A stretch of DNA of 60,785 bases, the filler included, from Dimorphilus gyrociliatus (taxonomy: Eukaryota > Animalia > Annelida): assembly GCA_904063045.1 (NCBI GenBank). It is 3 parts of 3 records of this genome, joined end to end, with 100 filler letters (N's around TTAATTAATTAA, not from the genome) between each part and the next. Parts side by side here need not be neighbours in the genome. Positions count along the whole stretch, not along the records: positions 31,035 to 60,785 come from CAJFCJ010000139.1; 2 more parts are not named here. One strand, written 5' to 3'. Shown here in pieces: positions 31,035 through 59,530 of the stretch; the first letter of the stretch is position 1, and every line of letters starts with the position of its first letter. The position numbers and the translations under genes are program-made. Below the pieces are notes generated by a model. The model was not told where the DNA came from. It saw only the letters and a list, made by a program, of their open reading frames with translations, and ran no database searches.

Positions 31035-31400
31035 GGAGGAGTGTGAATGACACAATCTCAACAGGAGGCAGATTGGTGGGAGACATCCCTCTAACGCTGA
31101 CAGAGAGGGAGATACTATGTAATAGAGGACATAAAGGCTATGTTCCACCAAGTGAACCTGAAAGACTCACATAGACAATACTTTGGCCTATTGTATTAGC
31201 CCCCAGGCAAGTTGAAATCAAGAGGGAACATAGCCGAATATGTGATGACAAGGCATGTGTTCAGAGAAAAAGATAGCCTGTTTAGAAGAAGCAGAAATTC
31301 CTACAATTACAATAAAACAAAGTACAGCATCCCTTTTTTTATTGCTGTGCAATGTATATGCACTGCCCTACACGAAACTAAGTCAATACCACTTATCTCT
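31035..31400 (+). mobile_element. BEL/Pao LTR-retrotransposon RT fragment
   Basis: SVNDTISTG.RL, DIKAMFHQV and EYVMTRHVF are Pao-type RT motifs; stop and frameshifts present. Confidence 0.75.
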
Positions 31401-31560
31401 ATCAGTGCTATCTGCATAGTACAATACTGGTTCAATACTACTTCTCTATTGTAGAATATAGCTGACGAATGTATGTGTACAAAAAGTATAGAAAAATTTT
31501 TTCAGAGTTCTGAATGCTTACTCAGCATAAATAAATAACTGAAATTAATCATTTTTGTAA

Positions 31561-34500
31561 ATGGAACAACTCTTAGAGTCTCTCAAAGAAGAAGTATTCG
31601 AAAATCAAACTCTTGAAAACCTTTTTTTAGAAAATGGTGTCAAAAGAGAGAATATTTTCATTGAAGACCTTACTTCGCTGTGTAAAATTTTGGACAAATC
31701 TGATGAAATCCGTCATACTAAACCTTTATTAGTGAGAATTTGTGATTGTTTCTCTAAAACTATAAAAACAGAGACACTTAATGAGACACTTAATGATGTA
31801 GATCATTGCGCCTTTCAACATCATTCGTACTTTACCAACGACCTTCAGATTGATCATAATCTAACAAATAATACTCTAATGTTAATGACTGGTGATACTA
31901 TGGAACCTATCTCATATTTGGAATTTGAAGATAATACCTACAATAATTCTTCAGATTTGATCTTCAAGATAAATCTTCTTTCAACTGAAGTTAGTATGAA
32001 TAAAAAAGATTTTTTTATTGAAGAACTAAAAAATCAATTAAAAGTTCAATGGATCACTAATGAATTTCTTAGTTGGATTTTTGACTATTTTAGAAAGAAT
32101 GAAAGAAAAGTAATTTTCATTCTTGAAAATTTTGATGAGTTGGAAGATATGGAAAATAAAAATTTTATAGAGACTTTTCTAAGAGATAATCCACAAGGTT
32201 ATTATTTCATTATTTGGTCAAGTAGGAGTTTACAGGAGAATGAAAAAAAATTAAAGAAAAGAACTAACTCAATGACTCCAATTTTCAAAGTTACTGTGAG
32301 TATTATCAAGATATAGACCTATATTAATTATCTTGTTCTCTATCTCAATATTTTTTTTTAATATTTACCAGAAGAAGGATAATTTCATTGATAAGAAAAA
32401 AAATGTTCCAAAAGATGAAGAAGATTTTTCCCTCCAAAAATATTTTTTATGTAGATGGTGCATGTATTTGAAACAATTATACAATCATCAAATATTTGTA
32501 TCATGTAAAACACATATGTGTCAAAGTCATGATCTTTTCAGAGATCCTGATTTACTGGTGTTAGTGAATATGATGGGAAATATGAAGGAAAATTTAGCAA
32601 TGGATCGTAAAGATTTAGACTCTTATTTAGATGGAAATTATCAAAACATATATTTCTTGCTCAATCACACAGATATCAATAAAACCTGGATGGATATATT
32701 TTCATCAGTAAAAAGAACTTCAATAAACTTATGGACTATTGGTGATAAAGGATCAAAATATTTAGGTGACTCACCTTTCACTTCTCTGGAACCGATTGAT
32801 AAACCACTGAGGGTAAGATTAATTAGTTTTATCCAACCAATAGAACTTTTACATTTTAAATTGTGTTTCAAAATAGTTGGCACCATTACAAAAATTAAAT
32901 AGCGAGTTCAAGGCAACTCTCTTCAAATGTGTCTATGAAAAGAGCCAAAAAACTAAAAATTGGCCTCAATCTTTATTTAAAATTTTGGGAAATTTAAAAG
33001 AAGATGAGAAGAATACTGAAGTTGAACGTCTCTTAAATGAATTATGTGAATATTTCATTCAAGAAACAAAAGTAAAATCAAAAAAACTCATTGAACAAGT
33101 ATTTTGTGAAAATATTAATGAGATTGAACAGAATTTAGGGATTTCCCAGACAGAAGACAACAATTTTCAAAATTTTTATCAAAACTTAAATATTGAATTC
33201 AAATTTTCAAATATAAATTTTGAAGGTGCTGGTCATTCTTGGAATAGAACCACTTTTGGTTATTTCAATAGAGAGAAAAATTTTGAAATAAATATCATAG
33301 GAAAAGTAGGAATGGGAAAAACTTTTCATAGTTTACACCTTTTAAATGAGTGGTTAGAAGATTCCAAATTTTGCTTTGGTTCACAAGTTGTTTTTAGGAT
33401 AGACTTGGAGAGAATAAAGTCTGGAATGAATGAATGTAGCAAAACAATAAGAAATCAAATATTCAGCAATCATGAATGGCTTTGTGAACAATGTATTGAA
33501 TGGTTTCTCCATTATTTTCAGGAGAAAAAAAAGAGGATTGTCTATATTTTAGACGAATGCAATAAATCAACAAATTCTGAAAATTACTTTCATCGAGTTA
33601 AAGAGGGAGAAATTTCATGTAAATTTCCTCGCATTATATTTCAAAGAAATTGGCCTAATGACAAAGCCTATTGTCTAGAAATTCAAGGATACCCACCAGT
33701 TCAACACATAGGAGAGGAATCAGATCTATGCCAAGGATCTTGTGTAAAGGAGTGGTTACCATATTGTCATATTCCTCTAGTATCGCATTATGTAAAATAT
33801 CACAAAATGATTTCTTGTAAAGATATTCATAAAAAGTTATTGGAGTATTTGAAGAAGGATGACATCAATAAAGAAGAATTTTCTCATTTAGTTTTCTTAA
33901 CTGAATTACCAGTTACTCTTAATTTTTTAAAGCATAGTTTGTACAATATTTCATTTTCTTTTAAAAATTTTGCTTAAATTTCAGAAAATGAAAAATTTTT
34001 ACCATTTGAGGGAAAAACACGCGAATTTACAAACAATTTAAATTTTCAATTACAAATAGGAAAGGTTAGATTTATAATTTTTGTTTGTTTTCTTATTATT
34101 TGCATAAATAGTAAATATAATAAAATCATTTCAGCTAATTTATGACATCAGGGCTAAGACTGTTCATGTTGTGATACTAAATATTGAAAAAGGCAGGGAA
34201 GGGAGTGATATCGATGTTCGAAATTTAAAATTAATGTTTAAAGTTCTTCAAGAGACTTCAGGTAAAAAAAATTTTATCTATACAAAGTTTTTCAAGTAAT
34301 GTAACTAATTTAACAGATTCAAAAACAAAATATGAATTTCATATTTGGAAAGATATAAATTATAAGAAGTATAAAAAGAAAATTTCTAATTTAAAGAAAA
34401 AGAAAATTAATGATGATTGTGGAGGATTATTGTTTTTCATCTTGTCACATGGGGATCAAAGTGGCTTTGATTTGATAGAAGATTCTGATGAAGCATTGTC

Positions 34501-35111
34501 AAATAAAATTAAATATTCTAATTTGGTCAAAGAATTTGATTATGTTCATTGTCCATATCTACGACATAAGCCGAAATTGTTCTTTTTTAACTGCTGCTTA
34601 GGAGGTAAATAGTCAAATCTTTAATAAAAAAAATAGCCATTTTTTGACAATTATTTTATTTTTCTCTAACAATTTCAGAAGAGAAAGTGATTAAAAGTAC
34701 AATCATTGAAAAGGAAACTCAGAGCCCTGATGGAGGTTCATCAAATGAAGAGGACGCTATACCAGTTAATACAGAAACTTTATTCTGTCCTGAAGATATA
34801 CTATGTGGTATCGACATGTTGCAAGTTTATTCAACTCTACCAGGTTTCTTTTCATTCTCTTCGTTAAGACTTGAAAAAATAAATGATTGTTAATCTCAGG
34901 TTTTAGAAGTGGACGCAATAAATCAATAGGATCACCATTCATTAGAGCATTCATCTCTGTAATGGCAGAAATGGCTCATAAAGAAACATTAAATACAATT
35001 CTGGAACATGTATTTTACATTATGGAAAACTTCTCCTATCAATTGAATGAAGAAAATCGTGTACAATTTCCATCATATAATGGAAATTTTAAAAGATTTT
35101 ATTTTTTTTAA
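31561..35111 (+). CDS. Tandem NACHT-like NTPase - caspase (peptidase C14A) fusion protein, about 1035 aa, 8 exons
   Basis: Exons 31561-32295, 32372-32812, 32877-33936, 33985-34064, 34135-34261, 34317-34604, 34679-34843, 34900-35111; phases 0,0,1,0,1,1,1 are all compatible and total 3108 nt. Walker A GKVGMGKT (33300-33323), Walker B IVYILDE, second Walker-B-like VIFILENFDE; caspase motifs REGSDID, ILSHG, KPKLFFFNCCLG, VYSTLPG, RNKSIGSPFI. The 33937-33984 intron is the weakest junction. Confidence 0.8.
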
Positions 35112-35234
35112 TAAAACATTCAACTTTGAAGGATGAAAATTTGACAAAATAAAATTTTAAAATATTCAATTTGTCAATTTCTTTTAGAATTTTCATCAAA
35201 GTCAATCAGTAATGCATGTGGAAGGCACATTATT

Positions 35235-35969
35235 TTGTCATTCCACTTTGTTCTTCTTGATATCATTTTTCAGACATTGAACACAATAACTATTTTGTTT
35301 TCAATTGATCCAGTCCTACACCATACTTACCACATAAAAAACGAAGATATAAGATATGGGGAATGTGACCAAACACAGTATCTTTTTAAAATAAAAAAAA
35401 ACCCTTTGGATGCTGAAAGGAATCAAAATATAATATCTTCTGGGAAGAAAGCTTTTATCTATTATACAAAGTATAGTTGTAAATTTCAAACAGCTGCGGC
35501 TTATATTACCTGTGTTGATGAGCAAAATGCTAATTGTCCTGGTGGAAAATAATCACTCATACAACAAAAATGAATAATGGTGCAGCAGTTGAATGCTCAG
35601 ATGACAACTAATTTAATTGTTGCAAATAAAATAAGAATATGTTATGCTAAGATTGTTATTGATTCAACATTGTCATGGAATTCAAATAAAGATATTTATA
35701 GAGCACACCTTTCAGGAATATATTATGTTGATATATCTGTAGCTGTATATATGAAGCAGCAGGCATCTGTTAGTGTGATTGTTAATAGTTTAGAGCCATT
35801 CTCTATGAAAAGATTTACTGCTGCCAATCATAAATCTCATGATACAATGAGTAGGGGAGGTATAGTTAGGCTATCCCATGGCGATGTACTCTCAGTTGAA
35901 ACAGCTAATAGCCCTTATAGTGGTGATTGGAAATTAACATCTTTGGCAATATTTTTTGTTTCATACTAG
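35235..35969 (+). pseudogene. C1q-domain gene, frameshifted (pseudogene or sequence error)
   Basis: ORF 35577-35969 is a clear C1q-like domain (WNSN..YRAHLSGIYYVDIS, TMSRGGIVRLSHGDVLSV, LTSLAIFFV). The upstream ORF 35235-35552 does not join in frame and no intron fixes this. Confidence 0.65.
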
Positions 35970-36283: not shown

Positions 36284-36425
36284 GATGAGCCTTCAAGCTG
36301 ACTAATCAAACCAGCATTTGGCCAATGTTGTAGCATTTTCTTGCATGGGTTTTAAGAGGTACATGTATAAGTTGCATAAAATAATAAAGTTCAACCATGT
36401 AAAATATAACCAAAGTTGTACAATA
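36284..36425 (+). repeat. Dispersed repeat family A, partial copy
   Basis: Matches 59391-59531 directly and 50072-50208 inverted. Confidence 0.88.
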
Positions 36426-36519
36426 TGTAAAGCAGAAGCCATGACCTAAACTTAAATTCAGAGAATGATATGAAAATTGAGAAAAACCACTTCCTGAATA
36501 TTCAGTATCACATTTGCAC

Positions 36520-37937
36520 TCATTTTCGGGAAATACAATGACATCCTCCCACACTGTTATTAGTCCTTATGGATAATCCATATATAGACCAATTCTCTGG
36601 TTTCCATATCGAGTTCATAATCCAAGTTGCTTCAAAATATTCCAACAAATCTGCAAATTTGTCTTTTTCTGTAAGTTGAGATTTCAATCTGTAAAATGTT
36701 GGAGCAATGATATGAGCAGGCAGAAAAGGTAAAGCCATAAGCTTTCTCATGTCTCTCCAATCCTCTCCTTTCTCCATATACTTTCCACAGTATCCAAGAG
36801 ACTTGAAGGATAATTAATTGTAAAGGCAAACCTTAAAGGTTAAATTAAAAATGAATGTTTTAGAGGTAGCTTTCTATATATTGCTTGAGTAAAATGGAAT
36901 ACTCATCCATGAATTTGTGATTCTGAATAAATTTTGGCTACAGATCTTCACAGACGCATCTCAAAGTCAATTGTTATCTTCTCAGGCTGTGACATGCCAG
37001 TCAGGTTTCTGATACTCTGAAGAATAAAACAGTGAGCTGAAAGTAGTTACAGAATGAATTTCTCAAAATAATACTTTAAAGCCTCTTTTATAACTTTTTC
37101 TTTTCTTTAATGTCACAAAAATAAATGCGAATTGAACATGTTTCATTTTACCATCTTTTTTGACATAGTTGTGTATAGATAAGAGCTGATAAAAAGGATC
37201 CTTTACAATTTTAAATGTCTCATCAATGAACCAGTGTTTTGACTGACCAAGCAAATTAAGTTGATGGCTGCTACCAAAAATAAGAATTCTCTCTTTATTT
37301 TCACAGATGTCATCTTTCAAAAAATCACCTGGGATGAAATCTGTATCTAAATAAAAGTCTACTTCTTTTGGTTCACTTGGCCTTAGTTTTTGCCTTGTAA
37401 AATTAGCCACTCTTTTCAAATAATCAACATTTGGCAAAGAACCTGTTTTGTTTTTTGTGTTTTAAGAGAATTGTTTCTGCTAGTCTTTTCCCACTGGAAC
37501 TTGTGTTAATATATAAATATCTTTCAAATCTTTTCTGATTCCGATGTCACTGGTTAGGTGGTTATTTTTACCATGAATATGTTCTAAACTTCCCTGGATG
37601 AATGTTTTCCTTGCTGGTGAATTCTTGCATGGCATCTTTGTTTTTTGGTCCTCTTACTGCACACCCAAATGATACTTTTTGAAGTTTTAGCTAATAGAGT
37701 GAATGAAAATCCATCATTGATTAGAATATTCAGTTTCTTCATTTCTAAAATGGCTGTCATTTTATTTTTCAACATTGTTTTTATTTTTGTAGGTTCCATT
37801 ACTATAATTCAAAAAAAATAAAATAAAAAAAACTTATGTTTTTATGGGTACAATTTCACTCAGGTATGGTTTCACCCAGTATGGGTACAGTTTCACTTGG
37901 GTATGGTTTCAACCGGGTACAGTTTCACCCGATACCG
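36520..37937 (-). mobile_element. Fragmented MULE transposon (FLYWCH + MULE domain) with one repeat-rich end
   Basis: 37584-37799 FLYWCH-like (DGFSF...WVCSKR..RCHARI), 37063-37437 WFIDETFKIVKDPFYQL, 36520-36777 MALPFLP...YFEATW...W....RTNN; frameshifted. Confidence 0.88.
37846..37930. repeat. Five about 16-nt GGTAYRRTTTCAMY tandem units (MULE subterminal array)
   Basis: gggtacaatttcact / ggtatggtttcaccc / gggtacagtttcact / gggtatggtttcaac / gggtacagtttcacc, just upstream of the transposase start. Confidence 0.85.
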
Positions 37938-44724: not shown

Positions 44725-47700
44725 GAAAATACTTTTCACCGAAGAAGCAATTTCGACCTTGAACTATTCAGCTCTTTTCACAACGTATCCGACAATAGTT
44801 TCTTCCTTAATGAAGAATGCGACTCTATAAAGAGATACACCAATAGTAAAGAAAGTTTTTCAATTCATTTCTATAAAAGAGGAGGCGTGTCTTGTTTTAT
44901 TAAATTAGGTCAAACAGTTTTTTGTCAAAAATCTTTAGGTAAAAACATTTATTAATGAACTTTTTTTCGTAACCTTCAAAAAATTTTTCAAGGTTAAAAA
45001 TTGCATTCAAATCTCTCTTTTTTAGACTCTAAACTGTTTGATTTAATAAATTGGAAATCATTTTTAAATATGGGTTTAGACTGCCCTAGAAATTCTTTTC
45101 ACTGTACTGGGGAAAATATTTGTATTAGTCATTTAGATGTTTGCAATGGACAAGACGATTGCATGTCCGGTGAAGATGAAATGAATTGTCCTAAATTGAT
45201 TACATATTATTATTGTTCCCTTCCAAATGAGAAAATTCCTATTCAATCTGTTTGTAATTTCAATGCAGACTGTAAAGATAAATCCGATGAGTTATTTTGT
45301 TGTGAGTTAATAATATAAAAAAGGATTTATAGAAAACTATACTCTTCCTTTCATTCAACAGACAACAAACTTTGTTCATATCACGAAAAGTAACAAAATC
45401 AATATGTCAATGATTTGTTATCTTTTTATTTATTTAAGTATTTTTTCAAATTACAGATCATGTAAAAATAGTCAGTGCATAGATCGTTCCAAAGTTTGCG
45501 ACAACGAGATCAACTGCTTCGATTCGAGTGATGAAGATTGTTTAAATTACGAAAAAAGTAACGAAAATGGTAAAATATCTTTTGAAAGTAAGATATAAAT
45601 ATATAATTTTGTATTTTTGAGTGATGTAAATCCTATTAGAATGTAATCCAAAAACTCAAGTAGATGTAATTTAGTTTATTATTCAAATGAATATATAAAA
45701 AGTCTTGTTAGAAAACCTTATTCGTCGTTAACGCACTGTAATAAAAGTCAATGCAACAAAGGTGAATTCTTATGTAAATCGACAAAGTATTGCATATCTA
45801 TTGAACAAGTCTGCGATGGAGTCAATCATTGTTGGGGTAATGAAGATGAGGCGTACTGCGGTATTTGTATACATAAATGTATAATATTTCGGATACATCT
45901 CTCTCTCTCTCTCTCTCAGATGATTTTCATCCACAAGGATATTTCAAGTGTAAAAATCAACAATTCTATATAAATGTCAGTAAAATTTGCGATGGTATTA
46001 TCAATTGCAAATATGGTAATGATGAATCATTTTGCCCAACTAATAGGGAAGATAAAAAGATAATTAATTGTTCATCTACGCCATCCTATAACTATTCATG
46101 CTCTGGAACGTATAAAGAAAATTCAATAATGAATCTTTCGTCAATTAATCAATTAACAATTAAGAAATTGTTCCTTTTGAATTATAGACATTTCAATGGA
46201 ATGTTTACTTCAGAATTCTTGTCATTTCTTCATATAGAAAATTCAAATATTGGAAAGAGATTTTCAAGTAGTTTTTCAATACCAAATATCGTTTATCTCA
46301 GTTTAAAAAACGTTGACATAACTCATTTGAATGAAATAATAAATTCTTCAACACCCTTAATACAGTATATTGATGTATCCCATAATCCTTTGAAAGAGAC
46401 AATTGATTACGAAATGATACCAAATATCAGATATTTAGATTTATCATTTACGAAAATTGAAATATTTTCAAGAAAATTTTTATTAAAATTAACTAAATTA
46501 ACAATTTTAAAAGTTCAAGGTTGCCGAATAAAATTGATTGAAAATAATATTTTAAGAGAGAATTCACTGAAATTATTGGATTTATCAAAAACAAAATTTC
46601 CGAGTCAAAAGTTTCAGAATTTAACAAATTATTTAGATAAGGTTGAAACTGTAAAAAGCGATTATTATATTTTGTGCTGTTACGCTTGGAAATATAGTTC
46701 AAATATTAAATTATGCTATCCAAAGAAATCATTATTCAATACATGTTCGGATTTATTGCACTCAAATTTCCTTAAAATTCTACTCTGGTTTATGGGAATA
46801 TTTGGAATAATTGGAAATATCTCTTCATTTATCTTTAGATTTCATTCGTTTAAGAGATCAACGCATGTATTTTACCTTTGTTTAGCATTGTCGGATTTCT
46901 TAACAGGAGTCTATTTGATTTTAATTGGTTGTGTTGATATATACTATAGAGGAATGTTTTACGAATACGCTTCCGATTGGATGAATGGAAACTTTTGTAG
47001 AACAATTAGTTTTCTTTTGAATTTTTCATTGTTATTTTCAAATTTAAATTTAGTTTTGATCAGTTGCGATAGATTTTACGCTACGTATTTCCCGTTCAAA
47101 CATTCGGAAACGTCAATGAAGAGAGTAACTCTATTGATTGGTTTCACACTAATCTTGTGTATATTGATAACGTCATTTCCTTTATATAACAATAAAGTTT
47201 AATTTTTTATTTCAATTATTTTAAAAGGGGATAATGAAATTTAAAAGACTTGAGAAAGAAAAAAGAAAAGAAAAGGAAAGGGCAGAATTGCCTCATAAAA
47301 CCTAACATTTTTTCATAGTTTTTTATCTTATCATTCTCCCTCTATATTCTCTCTTACTTCATCGATAACCGATAATTTCTTTTCAAAGGATACTTTTCAA
47401 GACTCTCCAATATGTTTTGAATTGCATATCAGGACTTTAAACAATGGAAATTCAATTTTCTCATTTCTAGTTTATGGAATATTTATATTTTTAATATCAA
47501 TTTTTAATTTAGTTATTTACGCTTTAATTGTTCGAAAAATAAATGACAGTAATCAAAATTTTAACAAGTCAAAAACGTCAAAAGTATCATTATCATTTTC
47601 AAATTATTTGATAGTATCATCAAATATAATATGTTGGCTGCCAGTATCATTTATGGGTAAGAAATTCCAGTTTCTTTTGCCATCCAATTATAGAATTATA

Positions 47701-48048
47701 TATCATAAATCAGGAATATATTGTAAAATATGGAATTTACAAATGAGTAATGATGCTTATACTTGGATTGTTATTTTAATTGTTCCTTTCAATAGTTTAT
47801 TAAATCCTGTTTATCATAATACCGACGAAATCATTCATTTTAGGAAACAATTGAAAAAACAAAAAGCTAAGAAAGAGTTGTTTAATATAATATTTTTCCT
47901 TACTTCCGGTTTATTCTTTTTCTCTTATTTAATATTTAGACAAGAGAAGACGAAAGATATTATATCAATAACAAAAGAGAAAGGTACAGTCAAAATGAAT
48001 TTCTTTTTTTTTGGATTAGATATATTTGAGGAAACTGGTAGAGAGTAG
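44725..48048 (+). CDS. GRL101/RXFP-type LDLa-LRR G-protein-coupled receptor (start and end uncertain; one apparent frameshift)
   Basis: About five LDLa repeats (CI....VC.G..DC..G.DE), LRRs (YIDVSHN, YLDLSFT, LLDLSKT), hinge CSDLL and 7TM motifs LALSDFLTGVYL, SCDRFYATYFPF, ICWLPV, PFNSLLNP. Multiple short introns; the A5 run at 45650-45654 needs one more base to keep frame. Confidence 0.88.
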
Positions 48049-50071: not shown

Positions 50072-50674
50072 TACAACTTTGGTTTTTTTTTACATGCTTG
50101 AACTCTATTATTTGATGCAACTTATACATGTACATCTTAAAACCTATGCAAGAGAATGCTATAACATTAGCCAAACATAAGTCTGATTAGTCAGCTTGAA
50201 GGCTCATCTTTAATTACCAATAAAGGTTTGGCCAAGTTATAATTCAATTAACTTTCCTAAATTTTCAACCTTGTAACATCCTGTTACTAAACATAAATAT
50301 GAAAAATATGAACTACACATTCCCGCAACTGTAAAGTGATGATTGGATATCAGAGGAAAACCTCAAAGTATATCAATCCTCGCTATTTTCATTCTAAGCA
50401 TTCCTATCTCGACTCAACACGCTGGGAAGATAACCTGGAAACAACCTCTACTGGAAGCATCCATCTACCCCTCAACATTGGAAGACAGTTTGGTAATTTG
50501 GCAACCTGCTATTACAAACTATCTATTCTGCTATTGAACTCTCATATTGTTACTTGCTTAAGTATTATTATTGCAAATGAACTGTTTGATTTTAAACATT
50601 TGTTTAAAGGTTCAAGTGGAACCAGTATTGTTGTAACTTGCAAAAGCATAAATTTGCCAAGCAAGAGCAGTACA
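50072..50674 (-). repeat. Dispersed repeat family A, about 600-bp copy (possible DNA-transposon remnant)
   Basis: Reverse complement of 58893-59530; the ORF track shows the shared translation (50336-50683 vs 58977-59264). Confidence 0.9.
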
Positions 50675-52933
50675 ACATGTTAGCCCTAAGTCATGTAATA
50701 GTTTTTTATGTTTTAATTATATGTGCATAATGATACCATTATATTTCAACTTCGTAATCCTTTGACCAAGTCAACCCAAGTTTTGGTAAATGGATAAAAG
50801 GAAATACATTTCCCCAGTTTGGCAGATCAGTTCTGTAACTGTCAGCTGATTTTAAACAATCAGCTTGCTTATTTAGAACTAGAAACACATTTACTCAATA
50901 CATATTCTTTAAACGAAATACTGCCATTTTGTTGATTAGTTTCCACCGAAATTACATTTATTGAGACTACTTGTGTAGGAACTTGAAAGGTTCTATGTGG
51001 TGTGAGTACTTTGGTGCATTGATAAATGATTGGAAAGGACGAATACTGTTCAGAAAAAGCAGAAGTTCGTATAATTACAATACAACAAAGTACAAAGTAT
51101 AATGATTTGATTTCCAAAAACTCATTTTTAATTAGTTGATTGAATAGTGTGAGAAATATTTCATTTGAAGATAGATATTTTATAAGGCAAGACCATAATA
51201 CTTTATTTTTGTTATTTGAATATGTAATGGTAAGAAAGCTGCTTCCCTCTACTTTTAGAGCAATTTTATCTTTTAAAAACTGTCCATTAAGTCCTTTTTC
51301 TTCTAAAGTTGAGTGAAAATTTTGATTTGACAATTATTTATGATGATTTGATAAGAAATCATGATCTACATTCATAATTTCACAATTTATTTGCAATAAC
51401 CAATTTTCTTAAATGAATTAAACTGGTAATAAATTTAATTTTTTTTCTGTAAAATAGTTTTTAAAATTGAGTGATTCATCAATAAATTCTGTGATATACT
51501 TGGAGGAATAAACTATTGCTATTTGAGAAAAATACTGAAACAAATTGCCAGTAATGTTTGCTCTGCAACTAAATTTTGGAAAAATAGCATCACTTTTTAC
51601 AGATATTAATTTGTTTTCAATCTGTATTTTCTTTATATCTGTTGAAATTGATAAATTTAAAACATCCTCCAATAAAAAGTCTTTTTTTAGTAATATCCAA
51701 TTATTATCAATATTTTCTTGATCCAAAGTTTTCAATTTTGTAGAATATTGAGAACAGTAATCAAATAAAATATTAAAATCAACAGATGTCTCTACTAGTA
51801 TAATATTTTCCAAAGTTTTGATATCAAACACTCAAGAATATAAAAATTCAAACTCTTCTGTTATTAAAGTTATATTTTAAAACAAAAGAGTGAAATTCTA
51901 AATATAGATTTTAAAAACAGATGTACATTGTTCTTTTCAATTTTCTTGTTAAATCTAAAGTAAGCTACTTAAATCATTTTAAAATGTCTCAATTTTTATG
52001 ATTGTTGTGTCAAGGTGAAATCTTTGAAGCTGCATACAACTTCTCTTAGTCTTTACAAACTCTTTCTTTTGAATATAGGCTGAAAGATGCTAAATCAAAA
52101 ATGTGTTTTTAGGTATTTCTTCTAGAAATATTTCTTTCTTAGAATTGTTTTCAAGTTTTATAGAATTTGAATACTTTGTCATATTCTGTTCAAGAATATG
52201 GCCATTTATGACTATTTGAATGGGTGTGTTCAGTATATTAAAGAATTTTTAGCTAATTTAAAAAACCTGTGAAACATTCTTGTAAAATTTTAATGAAAGA
52301 TTGATCACACCAAATCTATCTTCTTTTCTAATTGATAGTCTATCTATCTGACAGGATAATGAAATAATGATTTTATCAAATCAAGAATAGTTGTGATAGT
52401 TACTAAACTGCAATACGGTCAAAGAGAAAATTTGCTTCAGATCTCTGTATAATTCAACCAAATGTAATTCAACCTTATCCAATCTGGATGTACAGTTAAT
52501 TTGGACTTACAGCCAAATAAAGAAAAAAACAATGAAAATTAATAAAAAAAATTTTCACAAATATGATAATTTTCCATAATTTTTTTCAGTATTATAAAAA
52601 TACTTTGAGGCAGCCATTTTGTTATAGTCTATTTGTGTTTTGAAAAATGATTAGGCATGCTCCAACTTGAGTTTTGCCCTATTCAAAGCTTTTATAGCAA
52701 CTATAAACATTAACAGCAATAATTTGCTTTGATTTTTTTATTGGCAAATTTGATACCAACACTGAACACTCACAACTACAAGTATTGTGAAAACAGCCCA
52801 TTTTTTAATACATCACAAAATTATTTCATATTTATACTTCATTAACCTCAGCCCAGACCTACATGAACTGAAAATATTAAAACTAAAATTTTCCTAATTA
52901 TAGTTACTCTCTCATTGCTTTCTATGTTTTGTT

Positions 52934-58892: not shown

Positions 58893-59530
58893 TGTACTGC
58901 TCTTGCTGGCAAAATCTATGCGTTTGCAAGTTATAACAATACTGGTTCTACTCGAACCTTTAAACAAATGTTTAAATTAAAACGGTTTATTCGCAATAAT
59001 AATACTTAAGCAAGTAACAATATGAGAGTTCGATAGCAGAGTAGATAGTTCGTAAAAGCAGGTTGCCAAATTACCAAACTGTCTTCCAATGTTGAGGAGT
59101 AGATGGATGGTTCCAGTGGAGGTTGTTTCCAGATGATTCTCCCAGGTCCTTGGGTCCAGATGGAAGCTGCATGCCAAATGAGAATAGTGAGGATTTATAT
59201 ACTTTGAGGTTTGCCTCTGACATCCAATCATCACTTTACAGTTTTGCCAAAATGTGTAGTTCATATTTATGTTTAGTAAGAGGATGTTACAAGGTTGAAC
59301 ATTTAGGAAGGTTAATTGAATGATAACTTGGCCACACCCTAGGTAAGTTAATTAAATTATAACTTGGCCAAACCTTTATTGGTAATTAAAGATGAGCCTT
59401 CAAGCTGACTAATCAGACTTATGTTTGGCCAATGTTATAGCATTTTCTTGCGTAGGTTTTAAGATGTACATGTATATGTTGCATAAAATAATAGAGTTCA
59501 AGCATGTAAAATATAACCAAAGTTGTACAA
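58893..59530 (+). repeat. Dispersed repeat family A, about 640-bp copy
   Basis: Inverted match to 50072-50674; direct match to 36284-36425. Confidence 0.9.

Follow-up and report, generated by a model that had tools for sequence, protein, structure and literature searches.

To our knowledge, every animal caspase-activation platform studied so far is built from separate proteins, a STAND ATPase (Apaf-1 or an NLR) recruiting its caspase through death-fold domains. In the apoptosome, which pairs Apaf-1, CED-4 or Dark with caspase-9, CED-3 or Dronc, a STAND oligomer activates the caspase by induced proximity. Here we describe a gene of the annelid Dimorphilus gyrociliatus (assembly GCA_904063045.1) that encodes an NLR-type NACHT ATPase and a caspase in one chain. 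It lies on the plus strand at positions 31561–35111 of a stretch of 60,785 nucleotides (the window, to which coordinates refer unless another locus is named), within a sequence piece from CAJFCJ010000139.1 that begins 526 nt upstream of the gene.

Single-chain arrangements of this kind have been described in bacteria, whose metacaspase (orthocaspase)-NACHT-WD40 and STAND-CHAT proteins, like the fusion described here, join a STAND ATPase to a protease of the C14 fold. The metacaspase-NACHT-WD40 proteins are widespread, and the NACHT-HEAT-metacaspase of Trichodesmium carries its protease at the C-terminus (PMC3501461). Amphioxus has “shortcut” caspases of the TNFR-caspase, LRR-caspase and DD-caspase types (PMC2575513); in the supplementary files of that paper, caspase is named only in the models verified by reverse transcription PCR and in an active-site alignment, and not in the table of NACHT partners. 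Loss of APAF-1 is reported for annelids, and the prodomains of their caspases include TIR, ROC, kinase, ankyrin and Z-binding domains, with Dimorphilus among the animals covered and no NACHT mentioned (bioRxiv 10.1101/2023.12.11.571055). ScanProsite, which was used to survey the Dimorphilus caspases, would miss a NACHT as divergent as the present one. Shortcut and odd-prodomain caspases are likewise lineage-specific fusions of an upstream signalling domain to a caspase, with a NACHT partner in neither paper. A preliminary description of the locus, made from its sequence, did not recognise the architecture from animals. We also found no animal NACHT-caspase architecture described in the full-text literature, whose coverage excludes most subscription journals, so that a prior mention is possible; the architecture itself had, however, already been deposited in the form of a 30%-identical, uncharacterised paralogue (CAD5126865.1; UniProt A0A7I8WF87). 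As far as we could find, the novelty lies in an NLR-type NACHT fused to a true caspase in an animal, STAND-caspase fusions and shortcut caspases being already known.

The predicted architecture of the protein is one or two pseudo-NACHT copies, a NACHT module and a caspase. Its NACHT is of the same type as that of the NLR scaffolds NLRC4, NAIP, NLRP3 and NOD2, as judged by profile and Foldseek comparisons, and fusion and NLRs alike are presumed oligomerisation platforms for a caspase. Unlike the NLRs, the fusion carries no LRR, HD2, CARD, PYD or BIR domain and falls outside the NLR definition of a NACHT with C-terminal LRRs; P-loop-less NACHT remnants precede its active module, and its caspase is C-terminal in the same chain, whereas NLRs recruit a separate caspase via N-terminal death-fold domains. 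The concept proposed here resembles that of the apoptosome, but the fusion has a NACHT in place of NB-ARC, neither CARD nor WD40, and a single polypeptide; in comparison with initiator caspases, it has no N-terminal death-fold prodomain detectable by Pfam. The bacterial fusions have an orthocaspase or CHAT domain as protease, mostly at the N-terminus with repeat sensors after it, whereas here the order is reversed, repeats are absent, and an animal caspase with a p10 subunit (GSxFI motif) is encoded by a gene with seven spliceosomal introns and a spliced mRNA. The language-model features of the ESM Atlas placed the paralogue nearest to clusters that were all bacterial NACHT plus Peptidase_C14 or CHAT families. 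Horizontal transfer from bacteria, which these neighbours suggested, was rejected on the introns, the animal-type caspase and the annotated D. gyrociliatus relatives of the NACHT. Because those relatives include annotated proteins of the same species, the animal fusion looks to have arisen independently of the bacterial ones.

The preliminary description had proposed one gene with a single 3108-nt spliced frame, and this was confirmed by exact exon joins, GT..AG introns and spliced contigs from two sequencing runs (X2 and X3). The gene features are as follows.

31561–32295, plus strand: exon 1, residues 1–245, beginning at the start codon and encoding a helical N-terminal stretch and pseudo-NACHT module 1
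32372–32812, plus strand: exon 2, residues 246–392, with a possible second, more decayed NACHT remnant
32877–33936, plus strand: exon 3, residues 393–745, comprising a helical lead-in, the nucleotide-binding domain of the NACHT and a brief helical/winged-helix segment
33985–34064, plus strand: exon 4, residues 746–772, a short NACHT-caspase bridge, both flanking introns spliced in the X2 contig
34135–34261, plus strand: exon 5, first caspase strand and an S1-pocket Arg
34317–34604, plus strand: exon 6, p20 large-subunit core carrying the catalytic His and Cys
34679–34843, plus strand: exon 7, Asp-rich intersubunit linker and start of p10 (YSTLPG), flanking introns spliced in X2/X3 contigs
34900–35111, plus strand: exon 8, encoding the p10 small subunit (second S1 Arg, GSPFI) and ending in the stop codon
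35110–35115, plus strand: AATAAA, read from the sequence as a putative polyadenylation signal, overlapping the stop codon

Joined, the eight exons (3108 nt) form 1035 codons without internal stops, closed by a TAA at 35109–35111; an in-frame TAA stands immediately 5′ of the ATG at 31561. The piece is AT-rich (G+C about 24–34% in 1-kb steps), and with some 8% of random codons being stops at about 28% G+C, an open frame of 1035 codons is not attributable to chance (estimated at ~1e-39). The seven introns, all GT..AG, measure 48–76 nt with a median of 64, in agreement with the median of 66 bp reported for introns of the D. gyrociliatus genome (PMC7854359). Downstream of exon 3, the spliced frame has no Met ahead of the first caspase strand; the earliest one falls inside p20, so that the complete caspase cannot start by itself at an AUG, as the preliminary description had held in stating that it lacks an in-frame ATG of its own.

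Transcription was followed in contigs from four public runs aligned to 31100–35600. These are assembled contigs and not raw reads; they drop rare variants, and a contig that spans two genes is no proof of a single molecule. Run X1 yielded a collinear genomic contig (31455–34854) with no mismatches. From run X2 came one 3003-nt contig, also free of mismatches, that extends from 31454, 107 nt 5′ of the ATG, to 34843 and omits 32296–32371, 32813–32876, 33937–33984, 34065–34134, 34262–34316 and 34605–34678, which are exactly introns 1–6. This contig runs from the 5′ untranslated region through the ATPase and into the caspase as far as exon 7, and thus contains both junctions singled out earlier for checking (33936/33985 and 34064/34135). 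The alternative named with them, a transcript ending at the TAA at 33975–33977 beside a separate caspase mRNA, was not borne out: the RNA is spliced across 33936/33985 instead. An 833-nt contig from run X3 covers exons 5–8 with introns 5, 6 and 7 spliced (intron 7 as 34843 to 34900) and reaches 35074. All seven introns are accordingly removed as modelled in contigs of two runs, and the X2 depth is consistent with zero coverage of intron 3 (48.6 versus 61.7 in the bin 33818–33968). Minor intron-retaining isoforms may exist, as rare variants are dropped from contigs. The locus is a genuine, transcribed single gene of D. gyrociliatus encoding a 1035-residue protein. Two adjacent genes, the other way to read the locus, were rejected on the spliced contig, the lack of a usable caspase start codon and the conserved paralogue.

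Two observations on these runs stand apart. Run X3 is labelled as probable DNA, yet its contigs are spliced at introns 1, 2, 4, 5, 6 and 7, and it evidently holds cDNA or RNA-derived sequence. Directly upstream of the gene, 31251–31552 is a very high-copy repeat, where contig depth in X1 sums to ~1e5 (104 over the gene) and variant letters and loose ends are numerous. The X2 transcript contig begins inside it, at 31454, probably because of this repeat.

Exons 5–8 encode what the preliminary description had called a complete caspase. Its key residues are listed below.

34195–34197 (codon), plus strand: S1-pocket Arg in GREGSD, exon 5, corresponding to the ‘SRSGTDVD’ region of caspase-3
34445–34453, plus strand: SHG with the catalytic His, exon 6, aligned to drICE and caspase-2
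34589–34603 (Cys codon 34595–34597), plus strand: NCCLG with the catalytic Cys, the second Cys aligning with the catalytic Cys of drICE
34914–34916 (codon), plus strand: second S1 Arg in FRSGRN, exon 8

Pfam Peptidase_C14 (PF00656; cut-off 21.4 bits) matched exon 6 (E 1e-7, 32.4 bits) and exon 8 (E 6e-5, 23.2 bits). In the PDB, exon 6 matched drICE (3sip/3sir; E 3e-7) and caspase-2 (E 7e-5), both aligning at the catalytic His and Cys; exon 5 is 43% identical to the start of Peptidase_C14 in the paralogue P0005, through which the p10 stretch YSTLPG...GSPFIRAF was also aligned to that of caspase-3. The intersubunit linker (residues 911–960) offers four Asp sites: QSPD, NEED, CPED and GID. In the S1 pocket both Arg are kept, matching the two of caspase-3, and the Gln is replaced by Asn, a composition from which specificity is not readable. 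When the caspase domain of the paralogue served as query in a word-indexed search, the only match was to its own cluster if the domain was taken as a region of the full protein, and there was none if it was used alone. From the Pfam matches and the alignment to drICE and caspase-2, the domain is predicted to be a complete, true animal-type caspase, p20 plus p10 with the catalytic dyad, as first described but with NCCLG as a variant of the usual QACxG. The motifs quoted at the outset (GKVGMGKT, IVYILDE, SHG, NCCLG, YSTLPG and GSPFI) are all present. The claim that the protein has no LRR or WD40 sensor also held by Pfam, which found no LRR, WD40 or NB-ARC match in the window exons; nor did exons 1–3 match any death-fold domain (CARD, DED or other) at E up to 1. 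The caspase starts about 30 residues after the NACHT, at the place where NLRs carry HD2 and LRRs.

The ATPase is encoded by exon 3, in which three motifs could be assigned.

33300–33323, plus strand: Walker A (P-loop) GKVGMGKT, read from the sequence, with G, G, G and K unchanged throughout alignments A1 and A6
33537–33557, plus strand: Walker B IVYILDE, read from the sequence, its Asp invariant in A1 and A6
33645–33647, plus strand: sensor-1 Arg in FQRNW, invariant in A1 and A6

Remote homology and fold queries were made with individual exons of the window protein and with the full-length paralogue; an alignment of all window exons as fragments to the paralogue (A3) was stretched and unreliable and was not used for modelling. 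An exhaustive phmmer search with exon 3 against 1.84 billion cluster representatives matched three proteins only: a 931-residue protein of the paralogue (E 2e-17) and two NACHT proteins (E 7e-8 and 7e-5); of these three, the first and the last come from D. gyrociliatus. The two NACHT proteins, P0002 and P0003, pass the Pfam NACHT cut-off (41.5 and 58.5 bits), and a profile search added further members to their small family from D. gyrociliatus, Logan assemblies and ENA records. An independent NACHT hidden Markov model (HMM), built from nine family proteins with the window protein and paralogue left out, matched the window protein at residues 515–664, from Walker A to sensor 1 (63.4 bits, E 9e-22). 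Alignment A6, 13 sequences with exon 3 as the first row, served as a profile and for AlphaFold2. As a profile it matched NLRC4 (E 2e-30), NAIP (E 3e-29), NLRP3 (E 8e-29), NOD2 (E 1e-17) and ORC1 (E 6e-11) in the PDB. The AlphaFold2 model of exon 3 reached a pLDDT (predicted local distance difference test score) of 71.9 and a pTM (predicted template modelling score) of 0.75, with pLDDT of 84–92 in the nucleotide-binding core and below 50 past residue 330. Foldseek matched it best to NOD2 (1.6e-6), followed by NAIP, NAIP5, NLRC4 and NLRP3 (E 1.6e-6 to 1e-4; template modelling score 0.43–0.52 by query). The earlier assignment of a P-loop STAND/NACHT ATPase with intact Walker A and B is upheld by sequence, HMM and fold, and the AlphaFold2 model, in matching NOD2, NAIP and NLRC4, bears out the STAND/NACHT fold of the 32877–33936 exon. 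We consider exon 3 to encode a predicted real but divergent NLR-type NACHT with the residues required for nucleotide binding. Exon 4 may be a remnant of the winged-helix hairpin (‘LPFEGK’ against ‘LLIPF’ in the family), on a tentative alignment.

The NACHT family itself (P0002, P0003 and P0007–P0011) consists of proteins of about 500–730 residues and is apparently lineage-restricted, its members being D. gyrociliatus records or unlabelled Logan assemblies. Among billions of sequences, the fusion's NACHT has no other close relatives; its identity to these proteins is 19–25%, and some of them have LRR-like C-termini.

The preliminary description had read the protein as NACHT-NACHT-caspase. The NACHT of exon 3 is real, but that of exon 1 is degenerate and retains only the stretch after the P-loop. 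Exon 1 aligns to the exon 3 module from the post-P-loop strand through Walker B to the sensor-1 region, with a Smith-Waterman score of 106 that was reached by none of 2000 shuffles (44.7 +/- 7.2). A profile comparison by hhalign (A2 against A1) gave a probability of 97% (E 3e-11), and the independent NACHT HMM matched residues 124–238 (E 1e-5), over HMM positions 88–195 only. At the expected P-loop site exon 1 reads LMTGDTMEP, so that Walker A is absent, and FILENFDE occupies the position of Walker B. A feature search of the ESM Atlas with exon 1, to be taken at lead level only, returned NACHT, STAND and AAA clusters (score 0.89). These comparisons point to a NACHT-derived degenerate copy without a P-loop, and not to a second ATPase. 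For exon 2, hhalign (A4 against A1) gave a probability of 76% (E 2e-5), and the equivalent part of the paralogue matches the independent HMM (E 8e-6); it may be a second, weaker NACHT remnant. A clear third NACHT copy in exon 2 was not accepted, as its pairwise score in the window gene is at chance level (z 1.4) and the profile evidence is suggestive only.

The paralogue lies at a second locus of the same genome, on contig CAJFCJ010000096.1 (GCA_904063045.1), from which four proteins of 879, 897, 931 and 1146 residues are recorded; their common N-terminal sequence and shared contig led us to read them as isoforms of one gene. The longest, DgyrCDS14893 (P0005, 1146 residues), was deposited as an unnamed predicted protein. 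It matches Pfam Peptidase_C14 with E 8e-22 (78.6 bits, profile positions 4–225 of 233); its Pfam NACHT score of 24.7 bits lies below the 26.7-bit cut-off, as does an NB-ARC match (E 0.007) below its own. Residues 441–1034 of the window protein align to 529–1145 of P0005 (E 4e-67, 31% identity), the N-terminal module aligns with E 4e-9, and the caspase exons are 42–44% identical, giving an end-to-end alignment at about 30% overall. P0005 has nine exons, and all seven intron positions of the window gene are common to both genes, with one extra intron in P0005. According to the independent HMM, P0005 contains three NACHT-type modules, of which the first two begin past the P-loop, its second pseudo-module being clearer than that of the window gene. 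Both genes retain Walker A, Walker B, the sensor-1 Arg and, in the caspase, His and Cys, the pentapeptide of P0005 being NTCLG. The same architecture and seven common intron positions at 30% identity argue that the fusion is old and has been maintained; fusion and loss of the first P-loop would both predate an old duplication. The product of the window gene was not found in the two protein libraries searched, where all phmmer matches were at 28% identity or less, and it seems to be absent from public protein sets. Within the stretch that holds the paralogue (L001), the shorter isoforms of 879, 897 and 931 residues (L001:10001–14159, plus strand) enter retained introns and end before or inside the caspase, yielding NACHT-only products that could be regulators or unspliced RNA. 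A single-exon gene 6 kb upstream of the paralogue (L001:1667–3805, plus strand) encodes 712 residues with a RING finger, a B-box, about 12 LRRs of the ribonuclease inhibitor/NLR type and no NACHT; this gene may supply a separate sensor arm or may lie there by coincidence.

The second locus also bears on whether the fusion has a function at all. It might be a decaying duplicate, or the product of read-through transcription or contig misassembly linking a NACHT gene to an adjacent caspase gene, and the nature of contigs noted above, the absence of the window product from the protein sets searched and the intron-retaining paralogue isoforms that stop before or inside the caspase would all fit. 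We regard this as very improbable, given a frame that stays open for 1035 codons over seven introns, no Met from which to start a complete caspase separately, the mismatch-free collinear X1 genomic contig, and a second locus with this fusion, the same intron positions and catalytic motifs kept at 30% identity.

Based on this architecture, we propose that the NACHT module would self-associate in a nucleotide-dependent manner, or join an oligomer seeded by a related NACHT protein, and that the assembly would draw the C-terminal caspase domains together. The caspase domains would then dimerise and cut the Asp-rich intersubunit linker to give an active protease, with no adaptor step through CARD, DED, DD or PYD, and the protease would trigger cell death or a defence response; the P-loop-less N-terminal modules may form an autoinhibitory or sensing region. 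We infer ATP binding, oligomerisation, cis activation and a role in death or immunity from the sequence, and consider cis activation plausible. That the gene encodes an expressed NACHT-caspase fusion whose caspase is activated in cis by association of the NACHT is, in our estimate, about an even call.

Several points weigh against it. Exon 3 scores E 3.5e-4 and 20.9 bits with Pfam NACHT (PF05729), short of the gathering cut-off of 26.7 bits, and with an alignment of five sequences AlphaFold2 gave a pLDDT of 36.5, so that the usable model rests on the alignment of NACHT relatives. The module is minimal: it lacks some 40 residues that its relatives have ahead of the C-x-x-P-L motif, along with most of the winged-helix/HD2 part, and the first caspase strand follows that motif after only about 80 residues. 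The ADP-contacting His of the winged helix (FxHxSFQE) is placed differently from one alignment to another, at ‘FSHLVF’ in exon 3 or ‘NLNFQLQ’ in exon 4, within a shortened region. For so minimal a NACHT, ATP-driven assembly like that of NLRC4 is not assured. The caspase follows the ATPase in the chain, an order opposite to that in NLRs, Apaf-1 and most bacterial fusions, and the geometry of CARD clustering cannot be assumed; standing in place of the HD2-LRR arm and not as an N-terminal effector, it must be presented differently than in NLRC4 or Apaf-1. In the pentapeptide, NCCLG departs from QACxG by Gln to Asn and Ala to Cys, and P0005 has no second S1 Arg at the aligned position. Finally, protein and profile searches found no relatives outside D. 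gyrociliatus.

A stricter form of cis activation, close to that first suggested for the locus, is a true single-chain apoptosome or inflammasome, in which the NACHT alone would assemble by means of ATP, gated by the P-loop-less remnants as an inhibitor or decoy sensor, and would activate the fused caspase without a death-fold adaptor. We hold this form only tentatively and think it rather unlikely. The protein might instead behave as an adaptor-type NLR without sensing ability of its own, entering a disc or filament that a different NACHT(-LRR) protein from its lineage-specific family would seed once bound to a ligand, much as NAIP seeds NLRC4 assembly, the fused caspase replacing the CARD-caspase-1 step. 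The nearest NACHT relatives are consistent with such a role, being small proteins, some of which have LRR-like tails, in a family whose profile best matches NLRC4 and NAIP in the PDB. The absence of a Pfam-recognisable sensor domain and the RING/B-box/LRR gene upstream of the paralogue could be read in the same way, but the identity to the family proteins is just 19–25% and that gene's position may be coincidental, and we judge a purely recruited role unlikely.

The state of the NACHT-derived region admits a further explanation, in which it would serve as a long, largely inert prodomain for localisation or inhibition, with the caspase activated in trans by another caspase or protease and ATP-driven assembly uninvolved. 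The P-loop is already gone from one or two modules, the active one is cut short past its nucleotide-binding domain, annelid caspases have a wide range of unusual prodomains (TIR, ROC, kinase, ankyrin), and the caspase is closest in the PDB to the effector caspases-3/7 and drICE, which are activated by trans cleavage. Retention of Walker A, Walker B and the sensor-1 Arg in both paralogues at about 30% overall identity argues, however, for selection on nucleotide binding, and an inert region appears improbable to us. What sets the protein apart is an ATPase and a protease in one chain with almost no linker, expressed, and present in two old paralogues of one meiofaunal species.

Elsewhere in the window, a C1q-domain open reading frame (ORF) at 35577–35969 (plus strand; Pfam E 3e-5, just over the cut-off) begins about 470 nt downstream of the caspase stop and belongs to a distinct transcript, as a separate X2 contig of lower depth (35131–35600) covers it. 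A run of ORFs of 71–124 residues occupies 36306–37799 (minus strand) between the C1q gene and the next genes; the single one tested with Pfam (37063–37437) had no match. At 45001–48048 (plus strand) lies a receptor gene of several exons that combines LDL-receptor class A modules (E 3e-14) with LRRs and a rhodopsin-type seven-transmembrane domain (E 1e-9), an architecture of the relaxin/LGR type. The ORFs at 50336–50683 (plus strand) and 58977–59264 (minus strand) encode closely similar peptides with common runs such as TSKYINP and LNIGRQFGNLATC, and are probably a dispersed repeat or transposon fragment. The segment 52487–52579 matches L001:20110–20187 at 80% identity.

Whatever the mechanism, the gene places NACHT on the list of partners of shortcut caspases and adds to D. 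gyrociliatus a gene that was not found in the public protein sets searched. If the ATPase does control the protease, the fusion would offer a minimal and genetically simple test of induced proximity on one polypeptide and would show how a NACHT oligomer presents a C-terminal effector. It would also mean that the direct coupling of STAND sensors to caspases is found in animals as well as in bacteria. Should the single-chain apoptosome or inflammasome prove true, it would represent an independent animal reinvention of the bacterial STAND-caspase design, in a lineage reported to be without Apaf-1.

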